64,000 nucleotides of DNA from the IMG/VR virus record IMGVR_UViG_3300049043_000112, positions 172,017 to 236,016 of that record; one strand, 5' to 3'. The position numbers were made by a program, and so were the translations under genes. This document shows, one piece after another, positions 18,155 through 57,256 of the stretch. Numbering within the stretch: the first letter of the stretch is position 1; each line of letters starts with the position of its first letter. Under the pieces are notes generated by a model. That model was given only the letters and a program-made list of their open reading frames with translations, did no database searches and was not told the origin of the DNA.

Positions 18155-18263
18155 CTTCTGATTTCTTTTCTTCATTATAAGACACTTGTGGTTTCCTGTA
18201 AAGACCAGGCCAAGTGTCTCTAATGATTTCTGCGAGTTTATAAGGTGTTTCCGAACTAATCAC
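18135..18263 (-). CDS. Small hypothetical protein (MISSETPYKLAEIIRDTWP...)
   Basis: Manual translation, 42 aa; GTG overlaps the upstream stop. Confidence 0.6.
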   Translation of the reverse strand: MISSETPYKLAEIIRDTWPGLYRKPQVSYNEEKKSEDEEVSR

Positions 18264-18394
18264 GGATTATGATTCTTATTTTCTTTAATTTTAGTATAAC
18301 CCCAGACTGCTAGGGTTCCGATTCCAATTCCAGCAAGGCAACAGAGAAACATATGAATTAAGTGAATACAAGTGTTATGGTCGTGAGAGTGCAT
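18260..18394 (-). CDS. Small membrane protein
   Basis: Manual translation, 44 aa, one hydrophobic segment; starts right after petE. Confidence 0.5.
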   Translation of the reverse strand: MHSHDHNTCIHLIHMFLCCLAGIGIGTLAVWGYTKIKENKNHNP

Positions 18395-18395
18395 A

Positions 18396-18719
18396 CTATG
18401 AAACGTGAATGTGTCCAATCATTCCTGCCCCTTTATGAGGAGCACACCAGAAAGTATAGTCCCCTGGTTCTGGAAAGGCGATATCAAAATTTTCTCCTGG
18501 AGCAAATGCAAGACCTTCGTGTGAGAGTTCTGGATGGTCTTCTACAACAACGTTATGTGGAGGTAACATATTGTTGACAAAGTGAACTGATTCACCAGCA
18601 GCAATACTAATGTCTGATGGTTCAAATACTAGGTTGCCATTGGAACCCATTTGAACATCTACTGCCCATGCAGGAAGGGCAAAGAAAAGTGTAGCAAAAA
18701 GTGCGAGAAGAAACTTCAT
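18396..18719 (-). CDS. petE: Plastocyanin
   Basis: Signal peptide; Cu ligands HN...C.PH.GAGM. Confidence 0.95.
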   Translation of the reverse strand: MKFLLALFATLFFALPAWAVDVQMGSNGNLVFEPSDISIAAGESVHFVNNMLPPHNVVVEDHPELSHEGLAFAPGENFDIAFPEPGDYTFWCAPHKGAGMIGHIHVS

Positions 18720-23516: not shown

Positions 23517-23788
23517 TGTTTTTCTCCTTGATAAGGGTGTTGTTGTTTAAGTTCGGGGTTTGGTTGTGAGAAAACCATAGGACTTCTGGTTTTATTTTTG
23601 ATCACAATGAAAGCATCATTCTGATAAGTTACTGTTCCAAATGGTTTTGCCCACTTTGGATTTGCATCTGGATGAGTTGCAGTTCCAGTTACTGCTACAC
23701 CACCAATCTCAACAGAGAGTTCATCGTTGGTGTCCCATCCTAGTTTTTCAAGGGCAAGTGCAAACTGCCCAAGCATCCCAGCGGTCAC
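23513..23788 (-). CDS. Conserved hypothetical protein
   Basis: [25 protein letters not shown]; GTG overlaps the petF stop. Confidence 0.65.
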
Positions 23789-24078
23789 AGATTTTCCTCT
23801 TGTTCGGTGAGGATTACACAGTCGCTGGTAGGGTATGCCACACAGGTAAGCACCCAACCCTCAGCAAGTTGGTCATCATCAAGGAACGATTGCTCCTCGT
23901 TATCTACAGTGCCGCTGATCAATTTACCAGCGCAAGCGGAGCAAGCACCAGCTTTGCACGACGAAGGAAGGTCAACACCTGCCTCTTCTGCTGCTTCAAG
24001 AATGTATTGATCATCAGGACACTGAATAGTAGTCTCAGTACCATCAGGGGATTGAAGGGTAACGCTATAAACAGTCAT
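23785..24078 (-). CDS. petF: Plant-type [2Fe-2S] ferredoxin
   Basis: CKAGACSAC...C motif, 97 aa. Confidence 0.97.
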
Positions 24079-35903: not shown

Positions 35904-36602
35904 TCAGTTTGGAATAAATTTTGGATTTTTAGAGAAAGGTATGTATTGAACGTCTGAATGATGTAGACCTTGATACATATAATATTTTGTTGCTTTTAAA
36001 TTTAACTTATCAAGTATGTAATTAATGCCAGTATGTACTGTATGAATTTCTCTGGCATTTTCAAAAACTTTGCACCAATCAAATAATGTGAATCCTTCAA
36101 TAATTTTTAATTCAACTATAGAAGAATCAAAAGTAAGATTATCTAAAACATTAGAATATTTTGGGTCTACACTAGCCATTTTGTTAATAAAAACAAAATC
36201 AGTATTATCAGTTAATCCTAGTACATTATAATAAAGTTCATTCTCTTTGTCAATGTTTCTTTCGAAACAAAAATAATCGAACCAATCACTATCGCTACTA
36301 TCAATTAAAAGATACTTAGATTCCATAATTCTTTTTCCAGGAAGTTGAAATCCATCTGGAGATAAAAATAAAAAATTATCTTTTTCCATTGCAAACTGTC
36401 CACTATAATAATATTCTTTTCCAGGAAAATCATCACTTAATTTGCAAAAGGAAACACCCTTTACATAGTCACTTATCCAAAAAACATCATCGCGTAGTGG
36501 CAGAATAACTTGATATCCATTTTCTTTTAGAATGGAAGCAAACTTTTGGAGGTAAAAAACATCACCCAATCCTACAGGTTGTTTTATAAGTGCGGTCTTC
36601 AT
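35904..36602 (-). CDS. Putative glycosyltransferase, GLGD family paralog 3
   Basis: MKTALIKQPVGLGDVFYLQK...TLFDWCKVFENA.EIH. Confidence 0.7.
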   Translation of the reverse strand: MKTALIKQPVGLGDVFYLQKFASILKENGYQVILPLRDDVFWISDYVKGVSFCKLSDDFPGKEYYYSGQFAMEKDNFLFLSPDGFQLPGKRIMESKYLLIDSSDSDWFDYFCFERNIDKENELYYNVLGLTDNTDFVFINKMASVDPKYSNVLDNLTFDSSIVELKIIEGFTLFDWCKVFENAREIHTVHTGINYILDKLNLKATKYYMYQGLHHSDVQYIPFSKNPKFIPN

Positions 36603-37255
36603 TGTTCTTTTACAAAAACCGCATCTCCCCAATTTTTATCACCACTTAATTCAGTTTCAATATGTACAAAACTAAATGGTTTTAAATAATCATAAATCTC
36701 ATCAAATAGAGGATTATTATGATAAGGAGCATTGTATAAAGTTACTTCAGAATTAATGTACGAAACAGATTTGAGCAACTTAGACGCACCTTTGCAAATC
36801 ATAAGTTCCGCACCCTGAGTGTCCATATTCAAAAGATCAAAACCATATCCTAATTGATTTCTTTCAAGAAAAGTATCTAAAGTAAGTGAATTTAGTTTGA
36901 TTGTTCCACGATAACATTCAGAACCCCACCAAGAATTTTTAGCTTTAAGAATAGATGACATTCCTTTATTGCCAATAAGATGCCCAGCATCCCACCCATA
37001 ATAAAGATGAAAGTCTGTTTCAACATCATCTTTATCTGATACCAAACAATTAAATGGTAAACTCTTTACTTGATTGATATTCATAATTTTAAGATTCTCC
37101 AAAAGTTCTTCATAAACTTCTGGATTTGCTTCAACCCAAACAACTTCTTCTACACCCATTTCAAGATATTGTGGAAGTTCTCCACCTCTATCTGCACCAA
37201 CGTGAAGTACTTTTTTAATTGATTTAGATTTAAAATATTCAGATTTAAATGACAT
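36599..37255 (-). CDS. FkbM-family methyltransferase
   Basis: LHVGA..G, VEANP, TLDTF and NMDTQGAEL. Confidence 0.88.
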   Translation of the reverse strand: MSFKSEYFKSKSIKKVLHVGADRGGELPQYLEMGVEEVVWVEANPEVYEELLENLKIMNINQVKSLPFNCLVSDKDDVETDFHLYYGWDAGHLIGNKGMSSILKAKNSWWGSECYRGTIKLNSLTLDTFLERNQLGYGFDLLNMDTQGAELMICKGASKLLKSVSYINSEVTLYNAPYHNNPLFDEIYDYLKPFSFVHIETELSGDKNWGDAVFVKEQ

Positions 37256-37265
37256 TCAAAACTCC

Positions 37266-37895
37266 TTATTCGCCTATAATTGTAGAACGAATTTTAGATT
37301 CTTCGGAATCTATTGGATACGCAAGCATATAACCTTGGTCCGCATAATGTTCTACAAGAACGTGAGTTTTTCCAATTAATTCTTCAATGAAATCGCAGTT
37401 TTTTGCACCTGCAGTTGCTCTAAATTCCCAAGAACCAGCTTCATATGGACCATCTTTATAAACACGAAGATCGTCTATAACAAATACATCTTTAGATATA
37501 TCTCTATTCTCAGAAAGAATTTTTAATTCAACTTCTAAAGGAATTCTTTTAGAGTCATCTTTTTCTGCATCATATTTTTGCCCTTTGTAATCTGCTCCGG
37601 GAAAGTGAGCATCTAACCAGTATAAAGTAGGATGATTATTTAATTCATCAACTACTTTAAACATTTCATCTTTCGAATATCCATTATAAAATTTTACTTT
37701 ATTATCTAAAAATAGTTTTAAAAGTCGATTATAAAGTTCTTCATCTAATTCTATACCATACAGATCTTCAAACAAATTAGAATCAAGAGCAATTTTCATA
37801 CTCGATCCGTCACCTGTTCCAGTTTCAACAAAGTTTTTAATTTCATATTCTTGTACAAGAATATCTAATTTGATTGGATGATTAATGATTCCCAT
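37266..37895 (-). CDS. Methyltransferase-like hypothetical protein
   Basis: FVETGT..G, YWLDAH and IDD motifs. Confidence 0.65.
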   Translation of the reverse strand: MGIINHPIKLDILVQEYEIKNFVETGTGDGSSMKIALDSNLFEDLYGIELDEELYNRLLKLFLDNKVKFYNGYSKDEMFKVVDELNNHPTLYWLDAHFPGADYKGQKYDAEKDDSKRIPLEVELKILSENRDISKDVFVIDDLRVYKDGPYEAGSWEFRATAGAKNCDFIEELIGKTHVLVEHYADQGYMLAYPIDSEESKIRSTIIGE

Positions 37896-37896
37896 T

Positions 37897-38697
37897 TTAG
37901 TTAAAATAGTTAAGGTAAATAAAGTCTTCTAGGATTTCCATCTCCTTTGCTTTTTCAAGATTTTCTTGAATAGCATTCATTTTCGAATAATAAATTTTTT
38001 CAGAAACTTCAAATTCTTCCGATAAGTCTATTATACCATCTTTATTGAAGAGTTTACCAATATCAGGTGCTCCAAGATAAACTGGTATAGTTCCTGTAGC
38101 AAAACAATCTAAAAGTTTTTCAGTGAAGTAAGTTTCATACTGACCGTTTTCAATTGCAACTGAAAACATATAATCGCAGAGTCCTTCTTCCTTTAAATCA
38201 ATTTCTTTGAATCCACGACCATAAAGATCTACTTGGTCTCCAATTCTTTCAATCCATTCAAGTCTTTTGAGATGCCCCTCACACATTCTTTTGTTTGAAG
38301 AAATCATAGAAATCATTTTTGATTTCTCATAAATTTTTGGTTCTTGAATCCAAAATCCCTGTGCAGGTACCCACTTAAACTTATCACCCAAAGAAAGAAG
38401 TCTTTGGTCGTGAGTGAAAATAATTTCATAAGTATTTTCAACTAACTCACGATTTTCAATAATACTCTCAACAAGACCCTGTTTAATAAATTTTGATTCT
38501 AATAACCAAAGATATTTGGTTCCTGTTCTGGTATCATTGATTCCTTCTGCGATTGTATTATCAATATAGAAGGTGGCATCACCACCCCGCTTTACCCACT
38601 CTATGTACTTTGATACTTTTCCGTGAACAGAATAACCTTTGTTACCACCAGTTAAATGTGTGAAAGTATCTCCAACCAGATTAAACTTTTTTCGCAT
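37897..38697 (-). CDS. GT10 (alpha-1,3-fucosyltransferase)-like protein
   Basis: YMFSVAIEN...YFTEKLLDCF..GTIPVYLG. Confidence 0.85.
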   Translation of the reverse strand: MRKKFNLVGDTFTHLTGGNKGYSVHGKVSKYIEWVKRGGDATFYIDNTIAEGINDTRTGTKYLWLLESKFIKQGLVESIIENRELVENTYEIIFTHDQRLLSLGDKFKWVPAQGFWIQEPKIYEKSKMISMISSNKRMCEGHLKRLEWIERIGDQVDLYGRGFKEIDLKEEGLCDYMFSVAIENGQYETYFTEKLLDCFATGTIPVYLGAPDIGKLFNKDGIIDLSEEFEVSEKIYYSKMNAIQENLEKAKEMEILEDFIYLNYFN

Positions 38698-39736
38698 TGA
38701 TTTGCTCACTAATCCATGCATAAGTCTTGGCAATTCCTTCTTCAAGAGTTTGCGAATAATCCCAACCAAGTTCTCTACGAACTACATCATTATTAGAGTT
38801 ACGTCCACGAACTCCAAGAGGAGCATCAAGTTTATATTGTTTCTGTACTTCTTTACCTGCAACCTTAGCAGCGGTATCCACCAGTTGATTAATGGTTACC
38901 ATTTCTTCTGAACCAATATTTACTGGTCCGATAAACTCAGAATCCATCATACGACGGGTTGCTTCAATACACTCATCAATATAAAGGAATGAACGAGTCT
39001 GTTTTCCATCACCCCAAACTTCTATGGTCCCACCCTCTACGGGCAAATAGGCAACCTTACGGCAGATTGCTGCAGGGGCTTTCTCACGTCCCCCTTGCCA
39101 GGTTCCCTCAGGTCCAAAAATATTGTGATACCGAGCAACCCTAACAGGGATGCCATAATTACGGTGGTAAGCAAAGTATAGACGTTCAGAGAAGAGTTTT
39201 TCCCATCCATATTCAGAATCTGGGTTAGCAGGATAAGCGGATTCTTCACGACAATCAGGATTATCAGGATCTAGTTGATTATGCTCTGGATACATACAGG
39301 CAGAACCAGAATAGAAAATCTTGGTAGTGTTTTTACCATACTGTTCATTCATTTTATGCTGCATCTCAAGAACATTAAGATTGATGGTTGCAGAATTATG
39401 CATAATATCTGCATCATTTTCACCAGTAAAGACAAATCCTGCACCACCCATATCAGCGGCAAACTGATAGATTTCATCAAAGGTTTGAATATAACGATAG
39501 GGAACTGATTGATAGAAGTTACCTCTGTCACCCTTATATTCAAGGACACGACGAACGAAATTTACATCTCGAAGATCTCCAAGAATAAATTCATTTGCTT
39601 CGTGTTGAGAAAATTCTGGATACTTAAGGTCTACACCACGAACCCAATATCCTTCGGATCGTAATCTACGAACCATATGACTTCCAATGAAACCACCAGC
39701 ACCAAGTACAAGTGCTTTCTTAATATACTGACTCAT
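38681..39736 (-). CDS. GDP-mannose 3,5-epimerase-like / WcaG-type NAD-dependent epimerase
   Basis: GAGGFIG, QFAADMGGAGF, YGWEKLFSE and REKAPAA. Confidence 0.88.
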   Translation of the reverse strand: MSQYIKKALVLGAGGFIGSHMVRRLRSEGYWVRGVDLKYPEFSQHEANEFILGDLRDVNFVRRVLEYKGDRGNFYQSVPYRYIQTFDEIYQFAADMGGAGFVFTGENDADIMHNSATINLNVLEMQHKMNEQYGKNTTKIFYSGSACMYPEHNQLDPDNPDCREESAYPANPDSEYGWEKLFSERLYFAYHRNYGIPVRVARYHNIFGPEGTWQGGREKAPAAICRKVAYLPVEGGTIEVWGDGKQTRSFLYIDECIEATRRMMDSEFIGPVNIGSEEMVTINQLVDTAAKVAGKEVQKQYKLDAPLGVRGRNSNNDVVRRELGWDYSQTLEEGIAKTYAWISEQINAKKV

Positions 39737-40205: not shown

Positions 40206-40457
40206 TTATAGACCATCCGTGTCTTCTTCATCATCTCTTACGTAACAAGGAACTCGATCTGGATCTAACCATCTGCAATACTGATGATCTTCCATTGCAG
40301 TAGAACATTGTAGCACATTATCAAAAAGATAAATGTCATTCCAGCGTTTAGTATAGTAATTCTGCTTTTGTAGGCGGTAATCAGGTTTACCGTTAATTTC
40401 AAGAATACCTGCTTCAACAAAGCGATATCCCTCACGTTCCAGAAGAACCTTTGTCAC
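40206..40457 (-). CDS. Conserved cyanophage hypothetical protein
   Basis: 83-aa ORF, packed operon. Confidence 0.65.
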   Translation of the reverse strand: MTKVLLEREGYRFVEAGILEINGKPDYRLQKQNYYTKRWNDIYLFDNVLQCSTAMEDHQYCRWLDPDRVPCYVRDDEEDTDGL

Positions 40458-40665
40458 GCTTCAACAACCTCAAGATCACTGGCGATATACTCCATAAGCA
40501 TTTCGTAATCGTCAAGGGGTCACCAGAAAATACGACGCCTTCATTTTCATAGAAGCGGCGAACCTTTTTATAAAGTTTCGGACTCTTTACATCAAGGTAG
40601 ATTTCCCCGTTAGCAGCAAGACGAAGAGTGCTAACATCTTTCTTGAATTTTTGGATCAGAGACAT
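40454..40665 (-). CDS. Hypothetical protein (frameshift at about 40518)
   Basis: MSLIQKFKKDV...; restoring one C gives ...GDPLDDYEMLMEYIASDLEVVEA-stop, abutting the next GTG. Confidence 0.65.
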
Positions 40666-40719
40666 TGTTTTGTTTGTTGACCTAGTTATTATAAGTGGTT
40701 TAGACTTGTGTGTCAAGTG

Positions 40720-40739
40720 TGCCAGTGAAGTAACTGGCA
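40720..40739. promoter_or_regulatory. Palindromic operator-like site TGCCAGT-N6-ACTGGCA next to a -35 box
   Basis: Perfect 7-bp arms; 3 nt from TTGACA (minus strand), with TATAAT 17 nt further. Confidence 0.55.
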
Positions 40740-40740
40740 A

Positions 40741-40816
40741 TCGGAGTACCCGGATTTGAACCGAGATTATTCCTGCTCCCAAAGCAGGTGCCATGACCAA
40801 GTTAGGCGATACTCCG
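40741..40816 (-). tRNA. tRNA-Pro(UGG)
   Basis: Cloverleaf; CCTGC-TT TGG GA-GCAGG. Confidence 0.93.
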
Positions 40817-41051: not shown

Positions 41052-41268
41052 CAATATCCTCTCCAAGTCTTAAACTCATAGTAAAAGTATTGATCCACAT
41101 CACCACTCAAGGGGCATTATCTTCTCTATGTGCCCACACCTCACAAAACTCTACAATACGATAATCGTGTAATGAACTGTGCCCCCACATTCTTACAAAT
41201 GCTGATGCGACAAAATGATACCGCTGTCTAATGTGCGGTTCCGTTGCCTTTGTAATCTTCTGAATCAT
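41051..41268 (-). CDS. Hypothetical protein (frameshift at about 41112)
   Basis: MIQKITKATEPHIRQRYHF...; restoring one C gives ...APLSGDVDQYFYYEFKTWRGY-stop. Confidence 0.6.
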
Positions 41269-41350
41269 AGTATCCTCCTCTTGTACCGAAATATAAGGTT
41301 GTTAATACGAAAGGAACTGAAACAAATAAAAGTGCTTTTGCTAATAACAT
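41228..41350 (-). CDS. ndhP: NDH-1L small subunit NdhP homolog (40 aa)
   Basis: MLLAKALLFVSVPFVLTTLYFGTRGGYYDSEDYKGNGTAH matches the remembered NdhP C-terminus FGTRNGFYDTDQYHGNGSAH. Confidence 0.85.
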   Translation of the reverse strand: MLLAKALLFVSVPFVLTTLYFGTRGGYYDSEDYKGNGTAH

Positions 41351-41355
41351 AAGGT

Positions 41356-41445
41356 TTATTGTGGATAGGCATTGTGAAGTCCCCAATAAACAAAGGACCC
41401 AATAGAACTAAAAAGTAAAAGTGAGGATATAAGTGTTCTAGTCAT
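41356..41445 (-). CDS. NdhQ-like single-TM peptide (29 aa)
   Basis: MTRTLISSLLLFSSIGSFVYWGLHNAYPQ; ungapped match to the remembered NdhQ helix ending W-x-L-H-x-A-Y. Confidence 0.55.
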   Translation of the reverse strand: MTRTLISSLLLFSSIGSFVYWGLHNAYPQ

Positions 41446-41548
41446 TTTCATCCTCATAAGTAGATGGTTCTTCAAATAACTCATTCATCTTTTGTCTTAA
41501 AACTATTTCTTGTAGTTCTTGTAAGTCTTCTTCTGTGATTGTTATCAT
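41438..41548 (-). CDS. Small acidic hypothetical protein (36 aa)
   Basis: MITITEEDLQELQEIVLRQKMNELFEEPSTYEDEND; overlapping start/stop junctions. Confidence 0.55.
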   Translation of the reverse strand: MITITEEDLQELQEIVLRQKMNELFEEPSTYEDEND

Positions 41549-42542: not shown

Positions 42543-42986
42543 TTATTCTAATACAGAACGAAGCATCCAATGGAACTTACCATGTGTTTCCATTATAGTT
42601 TGAACAAGATTTGAAGTTGCAAATTGTTTTTGTGCATCTGCTTCTTCAGAAACATCAGCAAATAGTTCAACGATTTTTTTATTATCGTCTCTTAACTGTT
42701 TAACCATCTCTTTTGCATCAATATCTTGTGCGCTATTGGATGCCTGGTCAATGTGTGATACTTCTGTGATTCTTGAAAGAGTACTTACGGGTTTCATATC
42801 CAAGTATCTCATATGTTCAGTCAGAGTATCAATCTCTTCAAACATTGTTTCATACTGCCCACCAAAAAGAGTATGCAGTTGCTGAAAATCAGGACCAACT
42901 ACATCCCAGTGATAAATCCAAGTTTTTTGGAATAGAACAAAAAGTGACGCCTGGGCATCACTCAATAGTTTAAAGAGCTTTTCCAT
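42543..42986 (-). CDS. dps: Dps / ferritin-like DNA-protection protein
   Basis: HWDVVG..F..LH..F..QY......D...E. Confidence 0.9.
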   Translation of the reverse strand: MEKLFKLLSDAQASLFVLFQKTWIYHWDVVGPDFQQLHTLFGGQYETMFEEIDTLTEHMRYLDMKPVSTLSRITEVSHIDQASNSAQDIDAKEMVKQLRDDNKKIVELFADVSEEADAQKQFATSNLVQTIMETHGKFHWMLRSVLE

Positions 42987-43518: not shown

Positions 43519-44497
43519 TCAATTCTCTCCTAGACCAACTTGCTTGACCTTCAGGCGGGCACGGTTCAGAACTGAACCAGCAAGAGGAACATAACCCAGG
43601 TCATCAGCGATAGACTGCGCTTTGCCACTCAGAGCATAGTTCAGAGCATCACGGACTGCCTGTGCCTTACCAGGAGCATAACCACTCTTATAGGCAATAA
43701 TCCAGGTCAGAGTGGAGATAGGATATGCCTGAAGCACCTGCGGGGTTAGGGTCTTCACCAGCAAGAGTTACGGGATCCAGTTTGATTCCGTTCAGAGCAG
43801 CGGCACCAGTCACGGCAGAAGGTCCAACGAACTTACCTGCCTTGTTCTGAATAACTGCTGCTTGGAGTTTGTTGGCACGGACAAATCCAGTGTTCACATA
43901 ACCAATACCACCAACAGTGTTCTTAATGGTTCCAGCAACACCTTCATTGCCCTTAGAACCAACACCAGTAGGCCAGTTGATAGACTTACCTACACCAGGA
44001 GCCCAACCACCAAAAGCATCCAGAGAGTTGGTGAAGGCAAAGGTGGTTCCAGAACCATCAGAACGATGAACAACCATCATCTTACCAGCAGCACAACCAA
44101 CTTGCTTGTAATCGTTAATGCGACCAGAGAAAATATCAACAACTTGTTTCTGCGTCAGTTTCAGTTTGCAACCAGGCTTGTTATAAGCAATCGCAATCGT
44201 TCCACCGACCATAGGAATCTGAACGACACCACGCTTTACCTTTGCCGCTTCCTTTGCCTTGATAGGTTCATCAGAAGCACCGAAGTCAACGGTTCCAGCA
44301 ACGAACTGACGGATACCAGCACCAGAACCAACGGACTGATAGTTTACACGGTCACCAGAAGACACAGAGTAGTCTTGGAACCAGCGTTGGTAGATAGGTG
44401 CGGGGAAGGTGGCACCAGCACCATTAATGACAGGTCCAGCAAGTGCGGTAGTGGGAGCAAGGGCAAGACCGATTGTAGCAATGTGTTTAAGTTTCAT
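43519..44497 (-). CDS. pstS: Phosphate-binding protein PstS (frameshift at about 43733)
   Basis: GAGATFPAP, YQSVGSGAG, DFGASD, RSDGSGTT and AYPISTLTW; the two ORFs join by removing one T. Confidence 0.95.
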
Positions 44498-44610: not shown

Positions 44611-46098
44611 TCAGAAACGGAAGGTAGTCTGAATCACACCACCATAGTTAGAAGAAGCATTCTTCAGACCTTGGTTGTTGGACACATAGAACACCGCAGG
44701 GGTGATGCTGATGTTATCGCTAACCTTGTAACGATAGAAGGTTTCCCACATAATAGCATCCTTACACAGAGTCTCTGCGTTACCAGGAGCACCGATGGCA
44801 AAACCAGCAGCATTACCCTTAGCAAAAACATCGCTCCACTGAACACCGGCCATCCAAGTCTGCGAATTGGTAGCAGCATTAGGAGTTGCGGGACCACTTA
44901 CATAGTTCCAACCGTAAGCAGCACTCACAGAAGGAATGATACCAGAGGTCTTAGGCTGCCAGTAAGCATTCAGAGCATAACCGTTAGAGGTTTGGTTAGC
45001 AGCAAGAGTACCAGCATTACCAGCAACACCGTTAAAGGTGCGAATACGGGTTCCTTCAGTACCATTACGATAACCGAAAGCAATGCCATACTGAGGAGCA
45101 CGATAACCAAATTGTGCCAGAGTATTCAGAGCACCAGAGGCATCAAATTCACCTTTGGTTGAATCGTTACCATTCTGAGCAACATAGTTGATACCAGCAA
45201 CGAATCCACCCTTACCTTTCTTGGTAGGTTGTGACCATTGAGCACCGAAACCAGCACCAGTTGCCTTGTTATAGACACCAGGAGCACCAGCAACTTGGAA
45301 GAAGTCAAGAATATCCGACTTATATGCAGAAGGAATCCAAGCGATTTCAGTGTTACGAACCTGAGCACCGGCGGTAAGCATTACACCCTTTGCAAGTCCA
45401 GGGAAGGTGTAATACAAACGATCCAGAGTCATCGTGTTCGCATAGGTTTCTGCCTTGTCCAGTTTGAACAGGGAAGAAGAGGAACCGAATGGTTGACTGG
45501 AGAAGTTACCAGAACGCAAACGGGTCTTGAGCAAATCCTTACCTGTGAAGGAAGTATCAAAACTCAGGCGGAGGTCATAGTTGAAAGCGGTATTTCCGAC
45601 ATTGCTGCTGTTAGCAAGACGAGCACCGTCTACACCACCAAGAACGAAAGTTGCTTCACCCTTAAGTTTGGTAGTCGTGGAGAACTGTTGTGCTTGAAGA
45701 GTACCAACTTGAGTTTCAAGTTTAGCAACACGACCTTTGATGACTGCAAGTTCCTTAGCAAACTCATTCGCAAGACGATTGAGTTCATCGGTAACTTCAG
45801 TCACGCGATCTAGACAAGCATTCAGAAGTGCAGCTGCTTCAAAACGGGTCATTGCCTGACCACCACGGAAGGTTCCGTTTTCATAACCAGCAACACAACC
45901 ATAACGCTCAACAAGATTGCTGAGTGCCTGATAAGCCCAGTCAGTGGGTTTTACATCAGACAGTTGGTTGATGCTCGTGACTTGTTCCGTGCTGGCATAT
46001 TGGTTGACTGCTGCCATATTAAGATCTGCGGCATTCGCAGCAACAGGAGCAACCATTCCCAGAGCAACAGGTGCAAGCATCAGTTGTTTGAGTTTCAT
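44611..46098 (-). CDS. Cyanobacterial Som/OprB-type outer-membrane porin with SLH domain
   Basis: Signal peptide, SDVKPTDWAYQALSNLVERYGC SLH motif, FSTTTKLKGE, C-terminal TTFRF. Confidence 0.92.
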   Translation of the reverse strand: MKLKQLMLAPVALGMVAPVAANAADLNMAAVNQYASTEQVTSINQLSDVKPTDWAYQALSNLVERYGCVAGYENGTFRGGQAMTRFEAAALLNACLDRVTEVTDELNRLANEFAKELAVIKGRVAKLETQVGTLQAQQFSTTTKLKGEATFVLGGVDGARLANSSNVGNTAFNYDLRLSFDTSFTGKDLLKTRLRSGNFSSQPFGSSSSLFKLDKAETYANTMTLDRLYYTFPGLAKGVMLTAGAQVRNTEIAWIPSAYKSDILDFFQVAGAPGVYNKATGAGFGAQWSQPTKKGKGGFVAGINYVAQNGNDSTKGEFDASGALNTLAQFGYRAPQYGIAFGYRNGTEGTRIRTFNGVAGNAGTLAANQTSNGYALNAYWQPKTSGIIPSVSAAYGWNYVSGPATPNAATNSQTWMAGVQWSDVFAKGNAAGFAIGAPGNAETLCKDAIMWETFYRYKVSDNISITPAVFYVSNNQGLKNASSNYGGVIQTTFRF

Positions 46099-46153
46099 AA
46101 AAAGTTTTTTGTATGTACTAAACGACAAATAAAGGGTTTTAAAGAAAACCGCA

Positions 46154-55639: not shown

Positions 55640-57256
55640 TTAGAATCTAAATTTTACTTTACCCGCAATAGAATTGTTGGTAACGCCACTATTTACACCG
55701 TGGGATGCTTCTACGATTAACATTTCTTTATAATCTAACGAACCCCCCACAGAATAAGAACCGTCAGTCCCATAAGAACCATCAACACTGATACCAAAGA
55801 TATCATGTTTCTTGCCTCCAAATCTAGTTTCTAACTTAAGTCCTGCTTCACCAACATGAGATGTTTTACTATATGCATCAACTGTTCTTATTGATTCCGA
55901 TGAACCGGTTTCGGTATATGCGTTTCTAGTTACGTTAGAAACAGTATAACCTAAAAATGGTTTAAACCATCCAGAGTTGTTGGCATATAATCTGTTGGAA
56001 ATCCACCACTGTTGCCCCTCAGTTTTACCCCAATTACCAAACTGATACTCAAGTGTTCTAGCATAATCATAATTATCTTGCGATGCACCAGCATTAGTTA
56101 CAAGTGCTAAATCTCTGCCATGGAAACTATTGAATACACCAACATGCTGTCTCTTTAGATGTGAAATACTATCTACACCTTTCATTTCAGTATAAAGATC
56201 ATTATAATGTGCTCCAGCGGTCCATCCTTTTGTCAAATCATATTCAAATCCACCGCCAAGTATTGTTGTAGAAGATTCATATCCATCAGCATTATAAGAA
56301 TGAGCAAATCTGGTATTTTCAAATACTCTAAATCTTTTCTTGTGATTAGTGATTGGTTCGTGATTAAGAAGACCATTAATACCATCACTAATACTATCAA
56401 AAACTTCTAGTTGGTCAATACGACCAGAATAATTTGCATATTCGTGTGAGACTGCATCTTGATTTGCAGAACTTGTAGTAATGACTGGTGTTCCGTTAGT
56501 TACAACAGTTGAGTTATCACTATAAGTATCAGTTGTGACTGGTGTAGTTGTGGTGGTTGTTACGGTTGTGGCAGTAACAGTTGTGGCAGAATCAAAGTTC
56601 AGAGTCTGCTTTCCACCACTCTCAGAAGTTGTATGAGTAACAACAGTATTTGAGGTGTAAGTAGGATTTGCGACACTTACACTTACATTGTTTACAGTGC
56701 TTGAACTTACCAGAGTTGGTGGTGGTGGAGTTCCGCCAGTTTCGTAAATATCAAGAATACCATTCTGGTTAGCATCACCAGAGAGTGCTGCAGCAGAAAG
56801 ACTCACTGTGCTGGAAAGGATAACACTATCCATAGGCATCCAGTTTACAGTTGGAGAACCAGCAGCATTATAGGTAAACTGATAATCACCAGCGGCAAGT
56901 CCAGTAAAGGTTACACCCTGCCAAGTGGATGATACCTGACTATTACTTCCATAAGGAACTAGTGTTGAACCATTAGAAGTAAAATAGTTTGTTCCATCAA
57001 TCAATCCATCAGGTTTAGTTGCTGAAAGTAAAGTCCAGTTGACAGTTGTTGCTGAAAAGTTAGTTCCGTTGATACCTTGTAGAGTTAAAGTACCTTCATT
57101 AAACGTAGTTCCAGGGTGCCAGTTACCATACCAGAATGTAACTGATCCACCCCCGCCACCAACATATCCAATAGAGTTGGTGTGAGATAATGCTGCTGTT
57201 GGCACTCCAAGAAGAAGCGCAGACGCTGCAGCCAGCGCCTTTTGCGTGTTAGACAT
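55640..57256 (-). CDS. Autotransporter-like protein (signal peptide, passenger, Thr-rich linker, C-terminal beta-barrel)
   Basis: MSNTQKALAAASALLLG...; GGGFEYDL, KPFLGY, YTETG and C-terminal KVKFRF. Confidence 0.7.
   Translation of the reverse strand: MSNTQKALAAASALLLGVPTAALSHTNSIGYVGGGGGSVTFWYGNWHPGTTFNEGTLTLQGINGTNFSATTVNWTLLSATKPDGLIDGTNYFTSNGSTLVPYGSNSQVSSTWQGVTFTGLAAGDYQFTYNAAGSPTVNWMPMDSVILSSTVSLSAAALSGDANQNGILDIYETGGTPPPPTLVSSSTVNNVSVSVANPTYTSNTVVTHTTSESGGKQTLNFDSATTVTATTVTTTTTTPVTTDTYSDNSTVVTNGTPVITTSSANQDAVSHEYANYSGRIDQLEVFDSISDGINGLLNHEPITNHKKRFRVFENTRFAHSYNADGYESSTTILGGGFEYDLTKGWTAGAHYNDLYTEMKGVDSISHLKRQHVGVFNSFHGRDLALVTNAGASQDNYDYARTLEYQFGNWGKTEGQQWWISNRLYANNSGWFKPFLGYTVSNVTRNAYTETGSSESIRTVDAYSKTSHVGEAGLKLETRFGGKKHDIFGISVDGSYGTDGSYSVGGSLDYKEMLIVEASHGVNSGVTNNSIAGKVKFRF

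Follow-up and report, generated by a model that had tools for sequence, protein, structure and literature searches.

A phage-encoded NdhQ homologue next to NdhP in a 236-kb virus genome

NdhP and NdhQ are single-helix subunits found in the cyanobacterial NDH-1L complex, which serves respiration and cyclic electron flow, but not in NDH-1MS, the CO2-uptake form. They sandwich NdhD1, contact NdhF1, lipids and carotenoids, and act as molecular glue; loss of either disassembles about half of NDH-1L into NDH-1M, and loss of both nearly all of it (PMC6992706, PMC7021789, PMC11794437, PMC4131877). Cyanophages carry copies of several NDH-1 genes, including ndhI (P-TIM40) and ndhD (S-SCSM2R), presumed to sustain electron flow in infected cells, and ndhP, which is annotated in S-SCSM2R, is reported for P-TIM68 and is mentioned for phages in reviews. 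By contrast, we found no paper in the literature library searched that links NdhQ with cyanophages, other than through a reference title. Here we show that a 29-codon open reading frame (ORF) lying directly upstream of a phage ndhP is a selected phage gene whose product is homologous to NdhQ at the profile level, belonging to a family carried by more than 150 phage contigs. Its incorporation into NDH-1L is inferred, with only weak support from a complex prediction.

The locus lies in a 64,000-nucleotide stretch (the window; positions 172,017 to 236,016) of the 236,016-bp virus record IMGVR_UViG_3300049043_000112, DNA of which is found mainly in lake and freshwater metagenomes and whose nearest isolates are Synechococcus myoviruses. 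An earlier note, made from the sequence alone, had described adjacent NdhQ-like and NdhP genes below the ORF cut-off, separated by 5 nt, and direct reading of the sequence confirms this observation. Both genes are on the minus strand. The ndhP gene (41228–41350; 40 codons plus stop) starts with an ATG at 41350–41348 and stops at 41230–41228. The small ORF (41356–41445; 29 codons plus a TAA stop at 41358–41356) precedes it with a spacer of exactly 5 nt (41351–41355). Its frame is open up to 41484 (42 amino acids), with in-frame ATGs at 41484, 41457, 41451 and 41445, of which the last, giving the 29-residue peptide of the earlier note, is the likely start, as an ATG lies 28–31 codons before the stop in all relatives (33 in a few members with longer C-terminal tails). 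The start overlaps by 8 nt an upstream 36-residue ORF (41438–41548, minus strand), which is conserved next to the ndhQ-like gene in phage DSL-LC03 and gives a weak match to phrog_2505. A promoter and terminator scan showed nothing specific in front of the pair.

The identity of ndhP is certain and represents known biology. Its product matches the NdhP chains of the NDH-1L cryo-EM structures (phmmer, E = 8.4e-9 and 1e-7), with one helix and the whole C-terminal motif F-G-T-[RK]-x-G-x-Y-D...Y-x-G-N-G-x-A-H aligned, and it matches phrog_2173, a family labelled ‘unknown function’. It has 122 database homologues, including Cyanobium and Synechococcus proteins, with 13 invariant columns in the alignment with cyanobacterial NdhP, and tblastn finds ndhP in 370 phage records.

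To ask whether the 29-residue ORF is a gene, we first searched viral contigs with a DNA pattern for W-G-L-H-N-A-Y-P, which found 87 contigs. In every one, the motif ends a short ORF with a hydrophobic stretch and a stop 0–1 codons later, apart from one with a 5-residue tail, giving 42 distinct peptides of 28–33 residues. As this search fixes the motif and so biases its apparent conservation, we re-derived the family from the 80 viral contigs closest in NdhP, of which 74 carry a family member upstream of ndhP on the same strand, adding 43 distinct peptides. Motif variants are WGLTHAYP, WGLNNAYP, WGLNHAYP, WGLTNAYP, WGITHAYP and WSLTHAYP; W, A and Y are invariant, and G and L nearly so, in 56–57 phage sequences. 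In the ndhP-anchored relatives, dN/dS is 0.11 on the seven motif codons at a dS of 0.65, indicating purifying selection, and 0.57 on the helix, the sequence of which varies but stays hydrophobic. In the window peptide, the conserved motif W21-G-L-H-N-A-Y-P28 (41362–41385), followed by Q, is preceded by a hydrophobic stretch (residues about 4–20; 41386–41436), the predicted single transmembrane helix, which aligns with the NdhQ helix. A chance ORF, or an untranslated part of the regulatory region of the overlapping upstream gene, might be invoked, as the ORF is below the default cut-off of every gene caller, is unannotated in three isolate genomes and has thin RNA evidence: in one of four lake metatranscriptomes, contigs cover ndhP and the 3′ part of the ndhQ-like gene at a depth of only 5–9, where DNA carry-over cannot be excluded, which does not show expression. 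However, the ORF is intact in 87 of 87 and 74 of 80 independent contigs with constant length and a conserved ATG, and this conservation pattern effectively rules out the chance reading, which we regard as very improbable.

Homology to NdhQ was examined in both directions. The ungapped alignment with residues 22–44 of the 45-residue Thermosynechococcus NdhQ chain is as the earlier note had it, with 9 of 23 residues identical, including W-x-L-H-x-A-Y. Single-sequence E values are marginal (0.19 and 0.27), but NdhQ chains are the only PDB sequences reaching E < 10 with the peptide. A six-frame search of 201 cyanobacterial genomes with the phage-family profile retrieved true NdhQ as the best matches inspected, including a sequence identical over the aligned region to the Thermosynechococcus chain, the MSDLNRGIMKF type of many filamentous and unicellular genera and picocyanobacterial sequences with E values down to 3.9e-6 per genome. 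The Cyanobium usitatum hit is itself NdhQ by PDB match (E = 2.8e-4, with only NdhQ chains hit). In reverse, a profile built from 21 canonical cyanobacterial NdhQ sequences, with no phage or picocyanobacterial sequence in it, finds exactly one place in the 236-kb phage genome, this ORF (E = 1.1e-4); a direct hmmsearch of all six-frame ORFs ranks it first at 22 bits, with the next ORF at 13 bits, and adding four picocyanobacterial NdhQ sequences improves the match to E = 3.5e-8. Profile–profile alignment (hhalign) of the phage family against the 21 canonical sequences gives a probability of 96.6% (E = 6.3e-10), and 96.4% with a broader phage set.

As the homology rests on about 25 aligned residues, although from several independent directions, we considered whether a convergent one-helix membrane peptide could match NdhQ through hydrophobic composition and a short aromatic motif. 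Against 35,633 six-frame ORFs from 1.2 Mb of phage DNA, the top 159 hits of the canonical NdhQ profile are all family members and the first outsider scores 13.1 bits. Among 2,850 shuffles of the phage peptides, the maximum is 12.1 bits and the 99th percentile 5.8 bits, compared with a real median of 22 bits and 22–23 bits for the window peptide; reversed peptides also do not reach the real scores. An hmmsearch of 1.84 billion representative proteins with the phage profile gives 49 clusters at E ≤ 1e-3, most of them phage-type peptides of 29–33 residues, with one repetitive 1,540-residue protein; of the 17 fetched, seven were Cyanobiaceae NdhQ, the only cellular proteins identified among the matches, and the rest were short or longer uncharacterized ORFs with the same C-terminal motif. 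Sequences moreover grade from canonical NdhQ, to arm-bearing Cyanobiaceae NdhQ with the WGLTNAYP ending, to arm-less host NdhQ, to phage. Convergence is therefore considered unlikely. Pfam, NCBIfam and PHROGs gave no family, the only match being a spurious antiporter hit far below its cut-off; a word-indexed protein search with the 42-residue ORF found nothing; and tblastn of the peptide against phage records found nothing even though DSL-LC03 has a close copy, showing that this method is blind to the peptide.

The earlier note had remarked that the peptide lacks the N-terminal DFNRGIMKF arm of NdhQ. This is not a phage peculiarity. NdhQ is found in 58 of 61 genomes of the host family (Cyanobiaceae), and of 30 sequences read, 15 end in WGLTHAYP and 8 in WGLTNAYP, the same endings as the phage peptides, while only three keep a recognizable DFNRGIM-type arm; the others have a variable N terminus with D-S/N-P just before the helix. 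The arm thus does not define NdhQ across cyanobacteria. Both the arm and the G-A-D-S-P segment are absent in all phage members, and a search with [ND]RGIMKF found no viral contig encoding the arm. The window peptide is 54% identical to Cyanobium NdhQ over 24 residues, and phage peptides are on average closer to Cyanobiaceae than to canonical NdhQ. The phage gene is therefore best read as a host-family ndhQ trimmed to helix plus motif. It nevertheless lacks the pre-helix part, at least a G/S-D-S/N-P segment, that all cellular NdhQ keep, being present in all 30 host-family sequences examined and in canonical NdhQ, such that binding or function could differ. This raises the possibility of a decoy or dominant-negative form that competes with the host subunit for the NdhD1 site but fails to glue the module, lowering NDH-1L or shifting NdhD1/NdhF1 use, a reading to which the two complete genomes with an ndhQ-like gene but no ndhP also lend some weight. 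We consider this unlikely, as the gene is usually linked to an untruncated ndhP, occurs in one isolate with a full NdhD1, which suggests building the module rather than breaking it, and retains the C-terminal motif that is both selected and predicted to make contacts, and as the arm is evolutionarily dispensable in hosts.

Linkage to ndhP is common but not obligatory. In the 74 of 80 ndhP-anchored contigs that carry both genes, the two often bracket talC, gnd or PTOX. Nine related contigs show the same tight arrangement as the window (127–128 nt from the ndhQ-like end to the ndhP end), and other relatives hold gnd, PTOX and/or talC in the interval, for example in the order ndhQ-like, gnd, PTOX, ndhP. 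However, only 10 of the 87 WGLHNAYP loci have ndhP in reach, leading us to reject adjacency as a rule. DSL-LC03 and a 247-kb complete viral genome have an ndhQ-like gene but no ndhP (with positive controls), and many classic marine phages have ndhP but no ndhQ-like gene (Syn9, P-TIM40, S-RIM2, S-H35, S-RIM8, S-SCSM1 and S-WAM2). In S-SCSM2R, an unannotated ndhQ-like ORF precedes talC...zwf...gnd...ndhP, and the same phage encodes an ndhD that is 79% identical to Cyanobium NdhD1; its describing paper reports ndhD and ndhP but not ndhQ. Neighbours in the window genome include ndhP, ferritin, PstS and a porin, and, with Cyanobiaceae NdhQ the only cellular proteins identified among its matches, the gene qualifies as a host-derived cyanophage auxiliary metabolic gene. 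The genome has petE, petF and cp12 but no gnd, zwf, talC, PTOX, ndhI or ndhD. The earlier note had invoked petE and petF; both are in the window as it said, on the minus strand at 18396–18668 and 23785–24069, but lie 17–23 kb away and are weak support for the flux argument.

A complex prediction of Cyanobium NdhD1 with the window peptide, from an alignment without one peptide of an isolate record, gave only weak support, with a score of 0.46 against a best control of 0.00; that mark was reached by 58 of 80 solved complexes and 2 of 110 mismatches, but at 0.60 or under only 7 of those 80 solved complexes reached it, as did both mismatches that passed, and the calibration set held no protein under 30 residues. 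The predicted contacts are peptide residues 15, 18–19, 22–23 and 25–29 against NdhD1 residues 277–286, 409–418 and 506, the confident ones being the conserved C-terminal residues, which shows likeness rather than binding.

Collectively, these data support the main interpretation of the earlier note, that the phage supplies both an NdhQ and an NdhP; of the points set beforehand as able to overturn it, profile-level similarity to NdhQ and conservation of the motif among phage homologues not selected on it both came out in favour. That the 29-codon ORF is a real, translated gene we hold with very high confidence on the conservation evidence, and that it is a homologue of NdhQ with high confidence. 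Its translation, its presence in NDH-1L and its effect there are inferred, and that the peptide binds NDH-1L at the NdhQ site and stabilizes it is only somewhat more likely than not. We propose, as the most likely explanation overall, that the gene encodes a minimal NdhQ, most likely acquired from a picocyanobacterial (Cyanobiaceae) host and since stripped of the short cytoplasmic N-terminal segment, and that it is probably co-transcribed with ndhP. During infection, both peptides would insert into the thylakoid membrane and occupy the NdhQ and NdhP sites on opposite faces of host NdhD1 (or phage NdhD1 in S-SCSM2R) within the NdhD1/NdhF1 module, keeping NDH-1L assembled when host protein supply fails and sustaining ferredoxin-to-plastoquinone electron flow, proton pumping and ATP supply for phage replication. 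The bracketing of talC, gnd and PTOX in related phages, and the NdhD1 of one isolate, fit a cassette that feeds and drains the plastoquinone pool. The bias towards cyclic flow proposed in the earlier note remains inference. Alternatively, an NdhQ-derived peptide may now serve a different partner, such as another NdhD isoform, PTOX, another thylakoid complex or the partner of a second NdhQ-like small ORF of unknown role. Such paralogous ORFs, with a similar ending, exist in ordinary chromosomal contexts in four host genomes, showing that the motif is not exclusive to bona fide NdhQ, and the phage gene lies directly next to gnd, talC or PTOX in many phages. We regard this as unlikely, as phage peptides are closer to true Cyanobiaceae NdhQ than to those paralogues (median best identity of 54% compared with 38%) and co-occurrence with ndhP and NdhD1 points to NDH-1L.

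More tentatively, and at somewhat less than even odds, some cyanomyoviruses may carry a portable kit for the NDH-1L-specific module, comprising NdhQ and NdhP with NdhD1 added in S-SCSM2R, with which the phage would actively rebuild or re-stoichiometrize host NDH-1L during infection. The 29-residue form would then define the minimal functional NdhQ, helix plus W-G-L-x-x-A-Y-P, and would show that the N-terminal arm seen in the cryo-EM structures is dispensable for docking on NdhD1. More generally, a cyanophage ndhQ completes the phage set of NDH-1L micro-subunits, adds to the catalogue of phage photosynthesis genes a family that annotation pipelines miss and, alongside phage PPP genes, PTOX, petE and petF, strengthens the case that NDH-1-dependent cyclic or respiratory flow matters for phage replication. 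It also provides a natural minimal NdhQ for structure–function work, in a system testable in culture, as S-SCSM2R (on WH7803), S-SRM01 and DSL-LC03 all carry the gene. The finding that NdhQ is unannotated and mostly arm-less in Prochlorococcus, Synechococcus and Cyanobium, with host proteins labelled hypothetical or mislabelled in public databases, is relevant to models of NDH-1 evolution that score NdhQ presence by homology.

Compared with the approximately 45-residue NdhQ of the NDH-1L structures (PDB 6KHI, 6L7O, 6NBY and 6HUM, chain Q), the phage peptide shares one transmembrane helix followed by a C-terminal W-[GA]-L-x-x-A-Y, the same columns being conserved in NdhQ, but is phage-encoded, has 28–33 residues rather than 38–50 (about 40–46 being typical of NdhQ) and has neither the D-[FL]-N-R-G-I-M-K-F arm nor the G-A-D-S-P segment. 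Cyanobiaceae NdhQ (about 37–50 residues), which in the two genomes inspected is unannotated and lies between a thiamine-phosphate-synthase-like gene and ribF, shares the ending WGL-[TSA]-[HN]-AYP and mostly lacks the arm, but keeps 10–25 residues before the helix, including a conserved D-S/N-P, where the phage form starts at the helix. Cyanophage ndhP is the same kind of auxiliary gene, a host-derived, one-helix, NDH-1L-specific subunit carried by T4-like cyanophages, but is full length and widespread, whereas the ndhQ-like gene is narrower, found, unannotated in each, in 3 of 12 isolates tested (S-SCSM2R, S-SRM01 and DSL-LC03) in a non-random sample of 10 chosen as ndhP carriers and two as the closest DNA matches to this region. 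The phage ndhI and ndhD genes are likewise copies of NDH-1 subunits, but encode core subunits of normal size that annotation pipelines recognize.

In four lake metatranscriptomes, the part of this region that is by far the most abundant lies not over the ndhQ-like and ndhP genes but at window positions 40432-40800 on the minus strand, mainly 40470-40737, where a 77-aa ORF (ATG at 40665; phrog_552, unknown function) reaches a word depth of up to about 14,900, compared with 0-10 over ndhP and ndhQ-like. Two perfect sigma-70 consensus promoters (TTGACA, 17 nt, TATAAT) lie on the same strand, at 40912-40884 and 40716-40688.

Just upstream of the pair are three host-like genes on the minus strand, encoding a ferritin/Dps-like protein (42543-42986), a PstS-type phosphate-binding protein (43688-44497) and a 505-aa porin with SLH and OprB domains (44611-46128), the last of which is an unusual cargo for a phage. 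Downstream of the pair, at 36599-39736 (minus strand), is a sugar-modification cluster comprising a GDP-mannose 4,6-dehydratase/epimerase, a family-10 fucosyltransferase-like protein and an FkbM methyltransferase; phage DSL-LC03 has GDP-mannose dehydratase and GDP-fucose synthase at the equivalent place.

Elsewhere in the same genome, the second-best hit of the NdhQ profile (13 bits, E 0.02-0.11) is a small ORF at window 55738-55830 on the minus strand, ending in ...LILWGVR, which is probably just another one-helix peptide. A conserved small ORF of unknown function with a cysteine-rich helix (…HLIHM-LCC-AG-GIGTLAVWGY…) follows petE both in phage S-RIM8 (locus L001, 3173-3307, minus strand) and in this genome (G000, contig C1, 190279-190434, minus strand; window about 18263-18418).

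On the host side, NdhQ of Prochlorococcus, Synechococcus and Cyanobium mostly lacks the canonical DFNRGIMKF arm across the cyanobacterial loci L172 (1447-1581, plus strand), L171 (1474-1584, plus strand) and 30 further loci (L311-L340). In the two genomes inspected, the gene lies between a thiamine-phosphate-synthase-like gene and ribF. In public databases, NdhQ homologues are mostly entered as 'hypothetical protein' and some are labelled 'RNA polymerase subunit sigma'. Four picocyanobacterial genomes hold a second small ORF with an NdhQ-like helix and a WG[LV]-x-x-AYP ending (loci L341, 1926-2087, plus strand; L342, 1923-2084, plus strand; L343, 1995-2183, minus strand; and L344, 1995-2120, minus strand). 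These ORFs sit in ordinary chromosomal contexts, with PAP_fibrillin, DUF2808, MAPEG and DUF3288 neighbours, and may represent an undescribed NdhQ paralogue.

Among cultured phages, S-SCSM2R, which infects WH7803, encodes an NdhD1-type ndhD (L358; PQ898602.1, 137035-138543), ndhP and, in the gap before talC, an unannotated ndhQ-like ORF (L310, about 950-1050; PQ898602.1, about 182750-182850), bringing together three parts of the NDH-1L-specific module in one isolate. In relatives, represented by the ndhP-anchored viral contigs (L224-L303), ndhQ-like and ndhP bracket a variable cassette of talC, gnd and PTOX, with gnd within 2.5 kb of ndhP in 51 of 80 contigs and PTOX in 24 of 80, whereas in this window the cassette is absent and the two genes abut.
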